A DNA stretch of 64,000 bases from Auanema rhodensis (lineage: Eukaryota > Animalia > Nematoda), in NCBI GenBank assembly GCA_964057225.1, contig OZ059899.1, forward strand, positions 13,826,001 to 13,890,000, given 5' to 3'. The position numbers were made by a program, and so were the translations under genes. This document shows, piece by piece, positions 7,211 to 25,546 of this stretch. The number at the start of each line of letters is the position of its first letter. Position 1 is the stretch's first letter. Under the pieces are notes generated by a model. The model saw only the letters and a program-made list of their open reading frames with translations. It had not been told where the DNA came from and did not search any database.

Positions 7211-14196
<6,986 letters not shown>

Positions 14197-14319
14197 ACAT
14201 TTATTGTTACTTTTTGTTGTTTTATCATAAAATTTTCATATTATTTGTTATGATTGTTACGATTCAAAATACGTCTTGAAGTATCAAAGTTGGTATAACT
14301 GAACACAGCAATAAACATA

Positions 14320-14919
14320 CAGTCCTGTGCGAAATAGTTGGGACACCCCTATGTTAGACCCCAGAAAACCCCTTCAAACTACAAAAAAAAATTTTGCGAG
14401 TTTGTATAGTTTATATTCAGTCAAAATATATGTTAATATATTGAAAACTGATTTTATTATTATTTCTAAATTTATAAGGAAAAATAGTGTTTTTTGACTA
14501 TTTTGAATAATCCCTTTGGTATAATTAAGTTCTTTTCTGCAGCATAGCTTCAAACAAGTAAGCTTCAGCATCTGAATCTTAACAAATATCTATGAAGAGA
14601 ACTTGGTTAACGTACAACCAAATTATCCCATTCAAATGAAAAATAGACGTTTAGTGTACTCCTAACATTCTATCAAAAGATTATTTCTGAAGTCTTGATG
14701 AAACTCATGAAATTTATGAAAGAAGACTTCAAGCAGTTTATGAAAATTTCGGGGACTTCAGAAATTACTTTTAAACATGATTTTTAAAATTTTTAAGATT
14801 TTTTGTGAATTCATTATCGTTTTTTAACACTCAAAATATATTTTTCTTCAATTTTTGTAGTTTATGTTAAAAGATATGAAGAATTCAAGTGAGTGTCCCA
14901 ACTATTTCGCACAGGGCTG
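14320..14919. mobile_element. Non-autonomous Tc1/mariner-type element (MITE), 600 bp
   Basis: 27-bp terminal inverted repeats CAGTCCTGTGCGAAATAGTTGGGACAC / GTGTCCCAACTATTTCGCACAGGGCTG (1 mismatch), TA on both flanks, CAGT terminus as in Tc1; AT-rich interior without a transposase ORF. Confidence 0.9.
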
Positions 14920-15209
14920 TAACTAAAATAAAATTACCGAGAAAACCATATGTATTTAATAAATAAGAAACAAAAAAATGAGGTGAATCTGTCAAAAGGC
15001 AACTATTTATAACAAGTTTTAGCGAATTATATATACGCAACACAAGGATTACGTATTGTGAGCGAAGTCTTAGAAAACGAACGTTTTTAAAATTTCCCAT
15101 TTAAAAAAGTCTTTATTTCGGTTAAATTATTTTTAATATAACATGTTTTATATTATTAAAATAATTTATATACTATAGGATAAGTGCTAGTTATGAGAAG
15201 TATAGTCTG

Positions 15210-18091
15210 ATGTTGAAATATATTTTAATTTTGTTGTTTGCGGGTATGTAATATATAATTTTTGTCAAATTTTCATTCATTTCTTTTGAAGGAGCGGTGA
15301 ATGCTGTTGGCCTACCCGATGATATTTATTATAAAGTGGATGTTCATAGTGGCTCTGCTTGTTACCGTTTATTAAACGGAACGCACCAATTTGGATGTCA
15401 TAGTTAGTTCCGTTCACTTTCCGTACAATGACTTGTTATTTGCAGCTACGAAGCAAGATGGTTCTGGCGTAGTTGTAGTCATAAGAGATTTGGTTGAAGC
15501 TGAAAATATCAAAACTTGCTGGAGGTAATGATTTTGTTTTAATTTCCTTAATACTTTAATATTAAAGGAATCGATTTCCGGAATATAGCGGATCCTTCTT
15601 TATTCTCATTGATTTATCGCTGTTTGACAAGTATTACATTCTTCTTAACGCTTTTAACATTAAATTCGTTTAAGAACTGTTATAAAAGATTTACAATCAG
15701 CTACATGTGTCAACGGTATCATCTTGACCAATAAAGAAACACTTTCTTTGCAATCTACTGTTGTTGGCTCACATGATAGTCAATGTCCGAATGAGCAGAC
15801 TAGTAAGTTATATTTTAGATGTGAATATAATTCACATTTTTTTAGGCTTTTATAAAGATGGATGTGAAAAAAATTCCTGGAATAAAAAAGGTGCAATTAT
15901 TCCTCATGGCTTGAGGTATATGGATTGGAATAAACAGATTTTATACTTATCAAATGATACTCATATCAAATCTATTGAGCAGGTCGGTTTTAGATATTCA
16001 TTTAGTTTGAATTGTTTTATTATATAGTGTTATGATTTGTTTAACAAGCCTAACGGAAGTGATACTGTTACATATCCATTGTGTTCTGCTTCGTTTTCTA
16101 TCAGAAGTATGGCTGCTGGTTCAACCGAAATATGTTATAGACGTAGTATGCCAAATTCTCGTATTTTGGATTTAAATATTGATGATAGGTTAGTTTATAA
16201 TGTGTTTCTGTGTAATGGTGTATTTTCAACTTAGATCTGGAATCTGTCATAGCTTAAGTGGAAGAAGTGTTGTTGCTTTATTACCCCCAAATAAGAAAAA
16301 GGAAGGACCTAAACAGAAATCTAGTCAGTACATGATGCTATCTGGAAGGGTAATTTATTACCAATTTATTTTTGTAAAGTTAGTTTTTATAGTTGGACAG
16401 CTTTGGGTTTATACCAGAAGTATCATTTGGAGACATATCAGTTGTTACTTCATTGATCTCGATGTTAGCTGTTGCTAAGGGTATTGGAGATAACTATGAT
16501 AGTTTTGAGTCCGCAAGTGCCGCTTCTGATAAATATCTCTTGTACACTCTGTTCAACGGGGTTAGCTTATATATTTCCTTTTGTTTAACTTCTTATTCGA
16601 CATTTAAGGAAGCTTTTGATTATATTGGAAGTAGTCATATGCTATTTGACATCCAAAATAATCGTTTCCCTCATGATGAGGATGAAAATGCTTTGTTTGA
16701 ACAGGTGAGGATGATATTAATAAAAACTGACAGAATACTTTTTCAACTAGGTTTCTCCTGAGGACATCGTTGCCGTAATTGAGCCACAGCACATTGGTTC
16801 GGGTAGTGAACTGAAGATTATTGTTGATGATAAACAGATGAAGTTTGAAGAAGTATAATATATTTTTCTTCCTTTATATCTTTGACCATACTTGTTTAGG
16901 TGCATAATATCATTAGCTCCATACAAAAAGGAGGTTTATCACGAAGTGTGCATATTCAAAAACCCAAGAGTGGTTTACGAATGCCTCCATCCACCTGGCA
17001 TTCGTTGATGAAAGTAAATCCGAAAGCTGTTGGTGTTGTCTTGGCTCCATTCACTGAAGAATACGAATACAGGTGATATATATTTTTTCTTTTATTTCAA
17101 AAACGGATAACTTATTATAGACGAGTCAACAGTATGCTGGACAGAAACTCTTGGTCAGCCGAGGACAGAGCTGATACCATCCAGCAAATTGCAACTGCTG
17201 CAGCAGCTATTTTGCGAGTAGCTGCAGACTATGTTAGCATCAGTGAATCAGTAAAAGCTTCGTTAGTCATCGACGATAAATTTGTATGTTGAATTTTATG
17301 AGTTTTGTTTGTAATATTGCTTTTAGGTTTCTACACTCTTTGACTGTTTTATATCATCTAATGAAACCTATGAATGCGAATTCATTGAGAAATTGAGAGG
17401 AGTAAAGACACGAAGTATGTTCCACGAAGATTTTTCGTTATTCAATGGCTCTTTTGGCTAATTTCAGAAATAACCGATGTTAAAAGCTCTTATATTGGAG
17501 TTGGCGATGCTAATATGTTGCAAGTTTTTGCTCATTCATTAGCAATATATGCTTCTGGTACAACAGCTCATACCCATAATATCAAAGATGCAAAACAGTG
17601 TACAGACCTTGGTCGTGTTCAAAAGGTAGTTTTGGAAAAAACTGCAGTTATGGATCATACATTATTTTTTGCTTAGGCTTATAATTTTCATTGGTTGACT
17701 GATCCGATTACATCCACTAGTCATTGTTATCGTCATAGCGTTTATCTTGATGAAGCCATATCTCCAGCCTTCTTGATAGAAGGTATGTCACTCTTATAAT
17801 TTCTTTTAATATAGTAAATTCAGGCTATGATTTCAAAAATTCGACATATTCAACATGGACTGAATCAGTATATGAACTAGATGATTTGAAACTATTTTTA
17901 GTTGAAAGAAAGTAAGTTAAAATTAAATAATCTTTATTAAATTATTTCTTTTAAGATCGTTTGAAATTTGTTTATTCTTAACGGGATGCGTTATCTCATT
18001 GTTGGCAGTCTTAATTGCTGGAAGATGCTCGGAAGATACATTCATAATCGACGAAGGTGATATCAGAGCTGAACAAGGAGAACCACTTTAA
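15210..18091 (+). CDS. aph-2: Nicastrin, gamma-secretase subunit
   Basis: Signal peptide MLKYILILLFAG; CYRLLNGTHQFGC; hallmark FNGEAFDYIGSS; MPPSTWHS; AISPAFLIEGYDFKNSTYSTWTES; C-terminal TM and short tail ending EQGEPL*. Confidence 0.95.
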
Positions 18092-18346
18092 TTAATTTAA
18101 TTTAACTTATCATATTTACATCTCTTGCTAGGAGAGAAATCTCTTTAAAACCTTTATGCTGTCATAATTTTCTAATTTACCATTGTTTCCTTGATCTCAA
18201 TTCTTTTTATTTTCCGAAATGAATCCTTCTCTAAAGTTATTTTTGTTCTTGAGTTTAATGTTTATAGCTCATATCTACCTGACTTATAATGATTATATAT
18301 CTCCAAAATAGCATAATAACTTTTCTTCTTTTTTGAATTAGACTTC

Positions 18347-18759
18347 ATGTCTGAGCCAGGAAAGGCTCTGAAAACTGATAGGGAACGTTGCTATATAGTA
18401 GGTTTTACTATTATTTCAAAAATATTTTCTTCAATATTAGGCGAGAGACGCTTTCTTTGCTTGTAGTGACAGATATTTAGAACAAGGGTTATCTGAAGAA
18501 CAGGTATTCGAGGTAATAGTGCTTTTATTGACCTTTTTAGGCCTTGAAAAAGTGCAAAACTGAGAAAAAGTTGTTTGATACTGATTGCCCCACTTCTTGG
18601 GTTGGGCACTTTGTTAGAAAACACAACTTTGAAAGGTAGAACATGGTATCTCACTCATTTTTATCAAATGGCAATCTTAGGTACAAGAAAAAGTTGGCTG
18701 AAGAAGGGTTGAACGTAGCAGAGAAAGATGATGAATCTACTTCCACTCAGAAGCAATAG
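18347..18759 (+). CDS. COA6: COA6/COX6B-family cytochrome c oxidase assembly factor, 95 aa, 4 exons (absent from ORF track)
   Basis: Exons 18347-18397, 18441-18503, 18541-18635, 18681-18759 give MSEPGKALKTDRERCYIARDAFFACSDRYLEQGLSEEQALKKCKTEKKLFDTDCPTSWVGHFVRKHNFERYKKKLAEEG...; CX9C and CX10C followed by CPxSWVxxF. Confidence 0.88.
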
Positions 18760-20862
18760 AGTATCTAGATTATATTAGGATTGATTTGAATGATTTTTGT
18801 AGATTCTTTATAAATTTGGTCTTTTTCGATCGTTAGCTAGCAAAGTTGGCAATCAACCTGCCAAATTTAAGAAAGTACCAGTGCCAACGATAGCCAAGGT
18901 TATTGGTAGAATTAGATAGTTTCTATTTATGTTTACCGTTTTTTTAGAATAAAAAGTTATTAAAGACTGAATGTTTGTCATACAATGGTTCAAAAGATTC
19001 ATTTCCACGGATAGATTTCAAATTAATTTCTGAGAATTATGTGAGAAGCCCCTAATTTTATTATTTTCCTATTCAATTTTATAGAAAGAACCTGAGCGAG
19101 ACATGAGTCATACTTATCCTTTCCGTAAGTTACAAATACAAAGGTTTGCAGATTGATATATAGGTTTATTTTTTCCTTTTTAGAAGATGCCACTTATTCC
19201 CAGAAATTAGAGATTATATAAAAAATAATTTGTCAACCCCTATGAACTCTCAAATTTTGTTAGAAGTTTTAACATCCTTATTAGAAGCTAAAATTTATGG
19301 CAAATCCGAAGACGAAGATGTGATATTAGCTCAGAAGATATTTGAAGCACAAACAATCCCAATGCCTCCCGTTATTCAGCATAGTTTTGGTACAGGTTTT
19401 AAAAGATTATGATTATAAGTAGATTGCTTTCAGAAGCTCTTCATCTGCTTATAACAGATCCTTATAACGATAAAGCATTATCTACTTTATTCAAAGAAAA
19501 TATGATTCATATGGGTAAAATGGAAAGATTGTATGCTTGGAGTTCTTTAATGTGCGGCCAAATAGAACGATTCAAGTCAGTTCACAAAAGTTTTCGCTTT
19601 TTAAAAGTTCAGTGTTGTTGCAGAACCATAGTTTCTGAAAGTAAAGTTGATGTCACAGATCCTATTGTTTTGTACTTACTATGGAAACACATTGAGGGAA
19701 ACAAGGTATAGATACTTGCCATCATGTTATGCTTAATGTAACGTTAAGGCTGATCCTAATGACATTGCTTGCTTCCTGCTTGACCATTTACAAAAGAAAA
19801 AGTTGATGGTAGATATCGATTCTTTCGAAAAATACTTCGCACCTTTCTTAAGGTAATTTTAATTTTTTTTTGTTTTTTTCACCCATCAACATATTCAGAG
19901 AAATAGGAGAATTAACAAAGCCTGAACTAAGTGATGGTACTGTGGTTGATGAATATATACTGAAGACAAAAAATCTCAACGCAAATGATGTACAAATTCT
20001 AGAGAAGGATGTATTGGGTTGGCTTACGAACTTAGCTAAATCAGGAGGTGAATTGCTCTCATATTTAGTTATGACTTAAAGCCATCCGTCTATATTTATA
20101 GGAAGTTTGGGCAAAAGTGAATTATCTAATTTCCTACAGCAAGTCAAAATTTGGAAAATAAATGGCCTCAAAAACAAAACAAAGAAATCAGCTATTGTTG
20201 TAGATGCTCTTAATACTACTTGCGGTAGACGGGAAAAGCTGAATTCTTTTATAAATTCGTATGATAAGCTATATTATTATTGGAACTTCAATTTCTCTCT
20301 TTTCCAGGCTTACCAAAAAATATTTCAATGTATTTGTGGTCATAAGGAAACCATTGTCAGAATCGTTTTTCAAACAACGATTTCCAGGAAATGTTAGATT
20401 TTTCTCGTGTAACATCAAGTAAGAATGGGCTATTTTTAATTAATTTTCACATGTTTTAGTTCTGAGGATGATCTTTTTACAATTTATGCCGGTTTAGCAT
20501 GGGGTCCCACAGCCAAGCTTTTGAGCAATGATCTTTTCAGAGGTCACATAGCACGGCTGGAGTAATATATTCGAAAAACATCAAATATAATTTTTCTTTG
20601 TTTAGACATACAGGAAGTCTTTCTCTTAGTGAATGGCTAAACTCTTCTTCTTTGCGATTTGAAAAAGATGATAATAACTTCAACATAATGGTATTGCATA
20701 GTATTTAATATTCATAGTAATATGAGCAGTTTTTAGGATTTATCGAAACTTCAAAGATCTGTTAAGAAGTTAGATAATGGTGTTTATCTTATCCCAACTG
20801 AAGATAAAACACTAGTTCCTATAAAGTATCATTTGTTTAAACTGATAAAATCTCCAACATAA
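18728..20862 (+). CDS. PRORP: Protein-only mitochondrial RNase P catalytic subunit (PRORP/MRPP3-like)
   Basis: NYN nuclease motifs AIVVDALN, SEDDLFTIYAGL, LLSNDLFRGHIARL; N-terminus MMNLLPLRSNR|ILYKFGLFRSLASKVG is basic, acid-free and presequence-like; exon chain 18728-18760, 18803-18898, 18948-19040, 19085-19143, 19184- stays in frame. Confidence 0.82.
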
Positions 20863-21905
20863 TAGGTTTACTTATACTTCTTTCAAGTCTAATAGTTTGT
20901 TGTTATTTGTTATTGTTATAGACACCATCTGTTTTAATTCCCTTTTGTATTATTAAAGAATTTATAAGTCTTGTCTATCCTATTGTCAAAATAGAAAACA
21001 TATTTCAAGCTTAACGATTTTTATACAGCGTATATCGATAGTGATATGGCCATTATTCCTTCTGCTGGAACTTTAAATAATTAAATAGCTTTTAAAACAT
21101 AAAGTTTTGTGAATGGAGATTCAGAGTATGTACTCAATCGATTCGATCCCGCTCGATACCGTCACGAAATCATGCGCTATGTCAATTTCCTCGAAAATTC
21201 AAATCTTAGAAGGTCGTTAAGGTCTTAAATACCATTGCTCTACGATCAGAAATCATGAACTTATACTTTAGACTATGCAGCGGATCAAAACTCTAATGAT
21301 CTCTCTTACAAATTGTAGTTATCCTCCTTTTATAATTTTCGCACACCAATTCCTGCAACTTAATTTCCATTATCGATTAATTAGGATAAAATCAATGTTT
21401 AAACGTAATTGCTGCAATGCTTTTGCTTTATGAAGGTTTATAAAGGTTTGCAATTGTATTAAAACCTTATATAATTCATAAACAACTTTCCTCGGTGAGG
21501 TTATGCTCAACATCTGCTTTTATTGATTTCTGCGCCATTACCGCCAGGGTGGGGGAGTCGTTGTGGAGTCATTGAGATGGTTTAAATCCGAATATTAAAT
21601 AAAATCTTCAAAGGAAATACTTAATATATCTTGTATTGATAACTGAAAACGAAATCGATACTGAAATGTAAATTGAGTTATCTAATATACGGAGCCTTTT
21701 AAAAATGGATGCCCCGCCTTTGTGCCTAGGTCATATGCTGGACAAATACGTAGGGGCTAGCTGCACGAATATGCCCCTACCCATCGTGATTCTTTAATTG
21801 TTTTTTCCATTTTTTCGAAAGCACATTGTTATTTTTTGTGCTAACTATAACCAGTGTATCTTAAACTATCTTTTATATCTATTTTCAGAATAATAGCATT
21901 CATAA

Positions 21906-23974
21906 ATGAGGGAGGACGAAGAGGAAAGGCCATGCGTTCCCGATCAAACCCCCGAACATCTTAAACTGCCTCCATATGATGTAAGTTGAAATTTTAGGAT
22001 TTAATTTTTACATAATTATAGAGTGACAATGACTGCATCAATGATTATGACAATACTTCTGAAATTGATAGGATGGTTCATGTTGTAAATCTAATTCTAC
22101 ATGAGAATAATAACCGTCCCAGGTTCGAAAACTCAACTTCAGTTTTCTCAAAAACGGCTTAAGATATCTTCATAATTTTTTTTGATTTAGTTTCAGAAAT
22201 AAAAAAGCTTCAAAAAGAGGTGTATATGGTTTAGTTGGGGATGATCAAGATTTAGGAATTTGGTTAGTTAGTTTTTAACCGTTTTACAGGCAAATACAAC
22301 TCAATCATTCATACCTTCTATTTTCAGGGGCCCTTATTTGGAAGACATATATAGAAATAGTCATCTTCATCCTGCCTTAATTCCGGTACAAAATAAATTA
22401 AAATTTATAACAAAAATAAAAACTTTAATTTTTAGGATGCACGGCCTAAGCTTGCTTCAGACGAAGGATATACTTCATCAATCTTGCCAAAATGGGATGT
22501 TCTGAAACCTATAGATATGGAGGTAGAGGACAATGAGGAAGAAAAACCTGAAATAGAAGCAGAAGGATTACCCGAAGGAGGAGTTGAAGAAGGAGCTGAA
22601 ATAAAACTAGACGATGAAGAAGAGCCTGAAGTGGATGCATTAGTAGAAGCAGAGGCAGAAACTGAAAATGAAACTGAAACAGAAACAGAAACGGAAATAA
22701 AGAGAGATGTATGCGTGGTAAAGGTAAAAATTAAAAAAAAAAATAATTTTAATATGATCAGTTTCCAGTCTCATTTTGAAATCGATTACTCAACTCAATT
22801 GCCCTCAACATCAACATCGCCCTCAACTTCCCAAGGAAGTGAGGTTGATTCTGGCTATTCTCGATTATCAACTGTTTTAAGGTTTATTTTAAAAAATAAA
22901 TATATAAATTTCATTTCATTTTTAGATTTGGTAGTATTGATGGTCGAATCAATAAACGTGGTTGGATTAGTTTACCTAGTTTCAAAAGTTATAAACGCAA
23001 AAAGTATACCACAATTAATATAATTAACTTCTTATAATATTATTTAAGTAAAAAGGGTGATGGAACAGGTGAACACGAATCTTCAACTTCTCATTCAAAT
23101 GCTCCATTGTTCGATGATGTTAGTTTAATGTTTTGATTCTTTGTTGTAATTGTTTCCATGTTTCAGAACTATTATTATCGAAAATCTTCATTAAGAAGCA
23201 CTTATAAAGCATTGATGATAATTGATGATCCTGATCAGTATGTGGATAACTAATTTATAATGAATTTATATTGTTTTTAGTATACCTCTTGCACCTAAGC
23301 GAACACCTCCTCCTAGGTGTGATCCTGTTATAGTTCAAGATTCTAACCAAAACGAACCGGAAATGGAAATGGTGGTTGATGAGCAACCCTCAACTAATGA
23401 TGTTGCTCTTGCTGGCATAAAAAAGTATATTTTTCATATATTTTAAATATTTAACAAATGTGTCCTTCTTCAGTGATCATTCTTACCGACAGTATAGAAC
23501 AGATCACGAGTACGAGGATGAAGAAGTAGCTGAAGGAGATGAGGTTGAACCATATGAACCTACTGAAGATGGAGACGATACCGGGAAGGAAGACGATGAG
23601 GACGGGGACGATAGAGAGAGGGAGAATTATGATGGACGGTCTCGGTCGTATGAAGACGAAGAAGATGAAGACGAGAATAAAGATTATCGAGCTCGTGCAA
23701 GAAATCGTTTGGCGTATAGAAGGTCTTTAACTATTTTTATTTTTTTCAACTTCCCATATTTTAGTGAATCATCAGGGTCTTCCTGTAGTTCTGACTATCC
23801 TATAGAAGGCCGACCATATAATTATCAACGAAAGAATAGAGAAGATGAAGAATCGTCATCTTCAAGCCAGGGAAATCAATATGGTGATGAAGTTGATGAA
23901 GAAAGTGAACAGAGTTTTGCCGAACTCGATCTTTCTTCCGGTGATGGTTCTGCTACAACCGAAATGCGGCAAGG

Positions 23975-24007
<33 letters not shown>

Positions 24008-25546
24008 TGAAGAAGATGAAGAAGAGTAAGCGATTTTTATTCAAAAATTGTTTATGTTTATAATTTGTTTTAGAGAAACTGATAAGTCACATCCTTCCGG
24101 CAGTCAGTGTTATTTCTCAGAGCAATCGACAAGCGCTGGGTGAGTTATGATTTTCAAGTTCACAACTAAACTTTTTTTAGGACCTATGCTGATAGTTTTT
24201 CACGCAAAATTCAACAGGAAAACGAGGATGAGGTACTGATTTTTTTAAAAATAATTTATTGATATTACATTCTCAGGACATGAGAGCTGCCGAAAGTTTA
24301 GAATATGATATGAATGAAGAAGCTGATGTAAGAAGCTTTCGCCTCAGTTTTTTTGCTAAAATTTAATTCTTTCAGGGACCAGCTGAGGAGGATACTTATG
24401 AGCAATCTAAACCTAATTGGCGTAATACTAAACCTTCTAACAGTAGAGAAAACGTTAGTGTAACTCACACTTTCGATGATTTCCGGAGTTCAAATTCTCA
24501 GGTTCTAAACTCGTCTCACAATTTTATTTTATGCTATATCTAATTAAGAATGAGAGATTTGAGGAACGCGAAAATGTAGCAGAGGATGATGATGAGATTG
24601 TTATTGAAGAATTTGATCCGGGGCTCGTAATTGAGACAACGACTGATAATGATGAATTTAACCCATTTGAAGTTTAAATTTTATTTCAACTATTTGTAAT
24701 TCAAGAATTTTCAGGCAGCCGAAGCATCTTCATGTTCAGATCCTCGCAATTTTAGTATTTGCGAAGAAGAATGGTTAGACTCTCGGGACTCTGATGGTAT
24801 GTTATATTTCCTAGTTTTTCAATTTTCACCAACCCTGTTCCAGGCTCAGAACCAAGCAGAATGAATGGCATTTATCGTGAACCTGCTTCCGAAAATAATC
24901 AGGTAATATCCTTCTATCCTTTTGTGTCATTGATATTTCCTATCTAGGATGAAGATGATAGTATGTACGAACTTAGAGTATATCACGATGATGTCCGGTT
25001 AGAGCGTGTTAGGTTGGATCTGACCTTTGATGAATGATTTAACGATTAAAATCTCATTGCAGTAGAAAAAACGGTCAATCGTCCGATGATGAAGACGAAG
25101 AAACCGATGAAAGAGAAGAGCAGCCCCCTGGCCATATTAACCGATCTCTTGTTGTTAATGATGACGACGAGGAAATAGATGTAGTTTCAATTGATAATAA
25201 TGTTTCCGGACATGTTTCCCCCGAATCTCCCGTCTCCCAAAGTTCTTGTGCTGCTACAGGTGGAAATCAGTTTTTCGATTTTTGCATAACTTGATTCAAC
25301 GATTTTTAGACGAGCTATATTTCGAAGAAGGTCAAGAACCAATAGAGAATTTTGTCAGCGAAGAAGTCGAATATATTGAAGATAGTACTTTGTCTGATAA
25401 AAGCAAAATGGATGATAACTCTGGTATGGAGCATAATGGCAACGAGTAAGCAATCAGATTAAACTTTATCTCCACATATTAATGTTATCAGATTACCGGG
25501 TACATCTGGCAGATGGACTGGGGAGAATGGGAAGATAAGAGGCTAA
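21906..25546 (+). CDS. Large acidic low-complexity (Glu/Asp/Ser-rich) protein of unknown function, about 20 exons
   Basis: TTTCAG acceptor ~18 nt before ATG; regular exons separated by ~45-nt GT-AG introns; poly-Glu (23976-24026) and ETETE runs; no domain recognised; internal boundaries approximate. Confidence 0.7.

Follow-up and report, generated by a model that had tools for sequence, protein, structure and literature searches.

Adjoining COA6 and PRORP genes with a candidate dual-frame exon in the nematode Auanema rhodensis

Gene content of the locus

The window analysed here, a stretch of 64,000 nucleotides from Auanema rhodensis contig OZ059899.1 (positions 13,826,001 to 13,890,000), is AT-rich (32.7% GC) and has very short introns that run from GT to AG. 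On its forward strand we find the genes for COA6 and PRORP (Table 1), preceded by a same-strand cluster at 12843-18090 that consists of an EPRS-like gene and then a nicastrin/aph-2-like gene. In C. elegans, ears-1 and aph-2 adjoin too (ZC434.5 and ZC434.6), which suggests that the EPRS-nicastrin synteny with C. elegans is conserved; a literature search on the C. elegans neighbours (ZC434.x) found nothing. RNA contigs of the nicastrin-like gene end at 18216-18229 and the contig that covers COA6 starts at an AG acceptor at 18340-18342, so that a gap of 113-126 nt is left unbridged. This spacing fits the classic operon distance, the interval of SL2-type operons being about 100 nt, whereas COA6 and PRORP have no spacer between them and depart from that pattern. 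The contig of run X1 carries five extra, unaligned letters at its 5' end, and these may be the remnant of a leader. Past PRORP, the next coding-like stretches of the plus strand (22436-24026) are extremely acidic, with long Glu/Asp runs and no convincing Pfam match.

The four exons of COA6 splice into a coding sequence for 95 amino acids. In the spliced product the pair CYIARDAFFAC, which forms the first, CX9C half, straddles exons 1 and 2, and the CX10C pair CKTEKKLFDTDC is also present. Exon 3 matches Pfam family PF02297 (the COX6B/COA6 twin-Cx9C-type fold) with 28.3 bits, where the cutoff is 26 (E 2e-6), and in a search of the PDB its top three matches are human COA6 chains (E 0.04-0.06), with no COX6B chain among those listed. 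The downstream gene carries the nuclease motifs VVDALN and SEDD in its exons between 19184 and 20862. Its segment 20440-20562 aligns with positions 135-171 of Pfam PF16953 (E 1.4e-7) at 31.8 bits, which falls below the whole-protein cutoff of 39.1 because a single exon of 41 amino acids was scored, and the same segment aligns with human MRPP3 over the SEDD...RD nuclease motif of the NYN metallonuclease domain, with its conserved aspartates. The original prediction, made from the letters of the window, had named these two genes COA6 and PRORP; the matches on exon 3 and on 20440-20562 bear out both names, and the TAG that ends COA6 was found where it had been placed.

The exon translations between 19164 and 20076, each scored singly, gave no Pfam match that would mark the N-terminal PPR domain. 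A phmmer search with 19436-19705 against 1.84 billion representatives returned 0 matches, the query itself included, and two metagenome scans found no relatives of 20104-20256 and 19185-19388. One PRORP intron, 19576-19623, is 48 nt long, divisible by three and free of in-frame stops (SVHKSFRFLKVQCCCR); keeping it would add 16 residues and leave the frame intact, and it is removed in all four of the RNA assemblies described below.

Table 1. Features of the COA6-PRORP locus and its upstream neighbours, in window coordinates
Feature	Position	Strand	Remarks
Prolyl-tRNA synthetase part of EPRS-like gene	13541-14227	+	HGTP_anticodon, ProRS-C_1
Nicastrin/aph-2-like gene	lobes 15728-17289, end ~18090	+	Nicastrin lobes
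COA6 exon 1	18342/18347-18397	+	Start ATG 18347, context cttcATGt
COA6 exon 2	18441-18503	+	Donor phase 0
COA6 exon 3	18541-18635	+	Carries CX10C; matches Pfam COX6B and human COA6 chains
COA6 exon 4 (limits of the original prediction)	18681-18760	+	Stop TAG 18757-18759; uninterrupted to 18898 in the RNA contigs
Candidate dual-coding 32 nt	18728-18759	+	ATGATG; +1 frame MMNLLPLRSNR over COA6 tail DDESTSTQKQ and stop
Candidate intron, 42 nt	18761-18802	+	GT..AG, 24% GC; donor 1.0 bit, acceptor 6.0 bits
First RNA-supported PRORP coding-like segment (ILYKFGLFRSLASKVG...)	18803-18898	+	Presequence-like, without ATG; in-frame coding score
TATAAA	18809-18814	+	Possible variant poly(A) signal for COA6; putative role
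PRORP exon opening with AATAAA (18948-18953)	18948-19040	+	RNA contigs
PRORP exon with first in-frame ATG of the ORF (19103, codon 70)	19085-19143	+	RNA contigs, translation
PRORP exons (five of the last ten)	19184-19389, 19434-19575, 19624-19705, 19749-19852, 19899-20047	+
PRORP exons (rest of the last ten)	20102-20258, 20308-20418, 20460-20561, 20606-20690, 20737-20862	+
PRORP stop	20860-20862	+
PRORP 3' UTR	20863-20997	+	Contig ends at 20942-20997

RNA assemblies across both genes

The RNA data are assembled contigs from four runs of one study, the runs being labelled only as guessed RNA, and they were compared with the genome over 18100-21000. Minor variants are lost in such contigs, and leaders, ends and abundance are not visible in them; the comparison reported no loose contig ends. 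A single contig of about 1930-1990 nt covers both COA6 and PRORP in each of the four runs; it begins at 18340, on an AG acceptor located 5 nt upstream of the ATG of COA6. The introns removed from it number 15, of which 14 are listed directly and the fifteenth (19853-19898) was rebuilt from record offsets and the reading frame. Because these introns are absent, and because every one of them is GT..AG and 37-54 nt long, the contigs represent spliced RNA. The continuity from COA6 into PRORP is compatible with a single RNA of both genes or with mRNAs that overlap, and the contig by itself does not prove a single transcript.

According to the original prediction, a splice from 18760 to 18803 joins a start codon in the last COA6 exon to PRORP. 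In all four runs the contig is unbroken from 18679 to 18896, without gaps or mismatches, so that 18761-18802 is kept, and an 18760^18803 joint is missing from those listed for the four assemblies although 15 neighbouring introns have been spliced. For the dominant form of the RNA the proposed splice thus fails. The missing junction weakens the model of a shared exon and is not fatal to it, because contigs hide minor isoforms: the assemblies say only that the dominant RNA form over the junction keeps 18761-18802, and a minor isoform in which it is spliced out may exist.

The reading frame of PRORP extends to position 18803

When the exons are joined as in the RNA contigs, PRORP has an open frame of 503 codons (18803 to 20859), with a TAG (18800-18802) directly before it. 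The first AUG of this frame is codon 70, and the 69 codons ahead of it are AUG-less. Such a stretch stays open from 18803 in only 0.2-0.5% of shuffles (P 0.002-0.005). The position-specific composition LLR of the 69 codons is 17.5 in frame versus 6.6 and 5.1 elsewhere, where known coding chunks give 18.2 +/- 6.3, and their codon log-odds are +21.7 in frame versus -11.4 and -23.6 in the other frames, where noncoding chunks of the same 69-codon length never rise above -21. The exon 18803-18898 taken alone scores +10.3, the best noncoding chunk reaching 4.1; it reads ILYKFGLFRSLASKVGNQPAKFKK, which is basic and without acidic residues. If the N-terminus is taken from the start at 18728 joined to 18803, the first 50 residues include five K/R and zero acidic residues. 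The SEDD motif lies at residue 401-412 in the longer forms of the protein and at residue 332 in the form that starts from Met 19103, compared with about residue 434 in the 541-residue human chain 7onu_E.

It is very probable that the coding region of PRORP begins no further downstream than 18803; the frame extends back exactly to the acceptor there, as had been predicted. Since it does so without an AUG of its own, the start codon must come from elsewhere. The first AATAAA downstream, at 18948, does fall inside a PRORP exon, which is also in line with the original prediction.

A candidate dual-frame exon and a 42-nt intron

The letters on which a shared exon would be built are all in place. 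The ATG ATG at 18728-18733 stands in the +1 frame relative to COA6, whose end it overlaps by 32 nt; a GT at 18761-18762 and an AG at 18801-18802 bound the candidate intron; the PRORP frame is open from 18803, where the next exon begins; and no intergenic space separates the two genes. Joined across the candidate intron, the reading MMNLLPLRSNR continues directly into ILYKFGLF and runs in frame via all RNA-supported PRORP exons to the stop (11 + 503 codons). The stretch between the two parts contains in-frame stops, among them TAG 18776-18778 and the TAG at 18800-18802. With 18761-18802 retained, as it is in the assembled RNA, the frame that begins at ATG 18728 is only 16 codons long and ends at TAG 18776-18778. 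Further short ORFs on the assembled RNA start at 18790, 18971 and 18985.

In length and in AT content the 42-nt stretch lies within the range of the 15 confirmed introns (37-54 nt), and its donor, at 1.0 bit, is at the low end among the 15 real donors. Equally good pseudo-introns occur three times in 1983 nt of exon sequence. A GT located 37-54 nt before the acceptor, together with an in-frame, stop-free ATG, turns up in about 16-20% of shuffles, so that the GT/AG/ATG layout alone is not significant. Donors at 18601, 18613 and 18715 would also connect the COA6 ATG to PRORP in frame, with introns of 88-202 nt; we judge these routes unlikely, as they would produce COA6-PRORP fusions with atypical introns. 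The route from 18728 is the only one that supplies an AUG with an intron of normal length and without a COA6 fusion.

An inverted repeat of 8 bp, formed by GAATCTAC (18733-18740) and GTAGATTC (18798-18805), flanks the candidate intron, and its 3' arm overlaps the acceptor. Folding of the RNA from 18715 to 18830 gave no significant structure relative to shuffles (z 0.11), and Rfam reported no RNA family in the window.

An ATG-free COA6 mRNA and two start contexts

In the spliced COA6 mRNA, the 256 nt that lie between the start of COA6 and 18728 contain 0 ATG in any frame. Depending on the shuffle control, 5.7, 3.2 or 1.8 ATGs would be expected there, with P(0) of 0.003, 0.02 and 0.07, respectively; under the most conservative control the depletion therefore has a P of only 0.07. 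The original prediction had described ATG 18728 as the first ATG of its exon, which is correct, and it is also the first in any frame past the start of COA6. At the -3 position the COA6 ATG has a T, while the ATG at 18728 (gaaagATGa) has an A. Nematode start contexts favour A-rich sequence, and by this preference the context of the COA6 ATG looks weak and that of 18728 looks strong. In our reading, an ATG-free stretch combined with such a pair of contexts is a hallmark of leaky-scanning mRNAs with two ORFs (e.g. PMC7896298). The overlap is located in an acidic, unstructured-looking tail of COA6, past the CHCH core, where dual coding would probably cost little.

Discussion

The explanation that we tentatively put forward, as a possibility that we hold at somewhat less than an even chance, is that COA6 and PRORP share a dual-frame exon, which works only in a minor spliced isoform. 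The two genes adjoin without a spacer within an operon-like, same-strand cluster (EPRS, nicastrin, COA6, PRORP), and the most likely source of the PRORP start would be the ATG-ATG at 18728, read in the +1 frame of the last COA6 exon. Removal of 18761-18802 would link this start to 18803, and the predicted product would be a PRORP of 514 amino acids with a classic mitochondrial presequence. At steady state most of the RNA seems to retain the 42 nt, which would then probably be part of the COA6 3' UTR or mark an unproductive form, and since the retained form dominates, the form productive for PRORP would be a minor isoform. Two routes may lead ribosomes to ATG 18728. On a two-gene mRNA they might pass over the COA6 AUG, which is poorly placed, and continue scanning, a route that is possible because the COA6 ORF contains no other ATG, or they might start on an mRNA that is trans-spliced at 18681. 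In the original prediction, a choice between cis- and trans-splicing at 18681 would couple the assembly of complex IV to mitochondrial tRNA processing. Abundant COA6 mRNA, with a 3' end after TATAAA 18809 or AATAAA 18948, may mask the rarer form in a de Bruijn assembly. That the 42 nt are spliced out, that translation starts at 18728 and how ribosomes get there are inferences on our part. Taken as a whole, then, the original prediction stands in its gene identities, the zero spacer, the frame that reaches 18803 and the rank of 18728 as first ATG, and it is not supported in the 18760^18803 junction.

A related and, to us, unlikely arrangement is a single mature two-gene mRNA with overlapping frames, in which PRORP is started at 18728 whenever the weak COA6 AUG is skipped, and in which the regulated removal or retention of the 42 nt, with its in-frame stops, sets the ratio of PRORP to COA6. 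It is similarly doubtful, in our estimation, that PRORP starts at Met 19103. The protein would then have 434 residues, and 18803-18898, 18948-19040 and the start of 19085-19143 would be a spliced 5' leader or COA6 3' UTR that is open by chance, with overlapping or dicistronic RNA and no shared coding exon. Met 19103 is the first usable AUG of the only form that was assembled, as the TAG at 18800-18802 precedes the ORF in frame; it has an A at -3 (agacATGa), and the N-terminus that it gives, MSHTYPFRKLQIQRRCHLFP, is basic too, with its first acidic residue at position 21. However, this reading has to treat as chance the 69 upstream codons, which are so rarely open in shuffles and which code only in that one frame. 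It also gives the mRNA a leader with upstream ATGs at 18971 and 18985, to which an unspliced two-gene RNA would add those at 18728, 18731 and 18790, and it moves SEDD about a hundred residues away from its place in the human chain, to which the longer forms come closer.

The position of the ORF at an acceptor invites a different account, in which COA6 reaches its 3' end and PRORP is trans-spliced at or near 18802/18803, in the manner of an SL1-type operon, and is translated from a near-cognate codon; the candidates are ATT at 18803, or GTG, ACG and ATA at codons 27-30. We think it improbable. The ORF does start exactly at a good acceptor (6.0 bits) that has no cis partner in the RNA, and (M)LYKFGLFRSLASKVG has the highest amphipathic moment among the candidates (0.46). 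Against this, initiation at codons other than AUG is rare and inefficient, the canonical nematode leader is not known to carry an AUG that could stand in frame, 18761-18802 is joined on both sides in all four assemblies while the true spacer before COA6 is unbridged, and the ATG-free COA6 mRNA is left unexplained. A leader-supplied AUG of the flatworm type was considered as well, since the ORF starts at an acceptor, and was set aside on the sequence of SL1: to our knowledge canonical SL1 is without AUG, and we know of no single-letter SL1 variant that would give an AUG in frame with 18803. SL1-type operons of Caenorhabditis were reportedly described by Williams et al. in 1999. In that genus there are SL1-type operons that lack any intercistronic region (PMC9258526). 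They resemble COA6 and PRORP in being same-strand neighbours with no intercistronic region, in which the 5' end of the downstream mRNA is set by an acceptor beside the end of the upstream gene. They differ in that the downstream mRNA has its own AUG past the trans-splice site, whereas PRORP has none for 69 codons after 18803 and its candidate AUG lies inside a COA6 coding exon.

PRORP could also borrow the COA6 AUG itself, the two genes sharing a first exon within a single locus as unc-17 and cha-1 do, if the donor at 18397 or 18503 were spliced to 18803. Both donors, which end exons 1 and 2, are phase 0 and in frame to 18803, and at 3.6 and 5.3 bits they score above the 1.0 bit of 18761. A phase match is a 1 in 3 chance for each of them, though, and neither an 18397^18803 nor an 18503^18803 joint is present in the contigs; the introns would measure 405 or 299 nt against 37-54 nt in the 15 that were seen, and the product would have three to five acidic residues within its first 30, unlike a presequence. 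We regard this arrangement as very unlikely. Skipping of exons via the same donors could yield proteins in which the COA6 N-terminus is fused to PRORP. In C. elegans, one 3' splice site can be used in cis or in trans, as in alternative operons and at unc-17/cha-1. The likeness to such alternative operons and shared-exon loci is that an acceptor at our locus, either 18681 or 18803, could be used for cis-splicing or for the addition of a leader and so give different proteins; the difference is that the COA6/PRORP contigs show no alternative junction.

The shared, dual-frame exon that we favour is akin to mRNAs with leaky scanning and overlapping ORFs. Human MOCS2A/MOCS2B is an example in which one transcript encodes two unrelated proteins. 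Green algal polycistronic transcripts provide others (PMC7896298). With this class the COA6/PRORP unit has in common an upstream AUG in poor context, the lack of any AUG between the two starts and a second ORF whose beginning lies, in a different frame, over the end of the first. It differs in that its second ORF needs an extra splice of 42 nt, unseen in the assembled RNA, and in that its contig fits overlapping mRNAs as well as one mature mRNA; in mRNAs of the class the whole second ORF can be read from the second AUG of the existing RNA, and in the assembled RNA of COA6/PRORP it cannot. We see in the arrangement a variant of overlapping or dicistronic layouts and of zero-spacer operon layouts that are already known, rather than a system of a new kind.

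Nematodes normally resolve such units via trans-splicing. A dicistron gated by the 42 nt, if true, would mean splice-gated leaky scanning in an animal that is supposed to resolve its operons in this other way. Even if the shared exon is not real, an automatic gene model that starts from Met 19103 probably drops at least 69 coding-like codons of PRORP, likely with the targeting sequence among them. Should the shared exon prove real, it would physically interlock two nuclear genes that serve mitochondrial biogenesis, one for an assembly factor of the copper site of complex IV and the other for the catalytic subunit of mitochondrial RNase P, and the output of PRORP would hinge on a 42-nt splice and on ribosomes that bypass the start of COA6.
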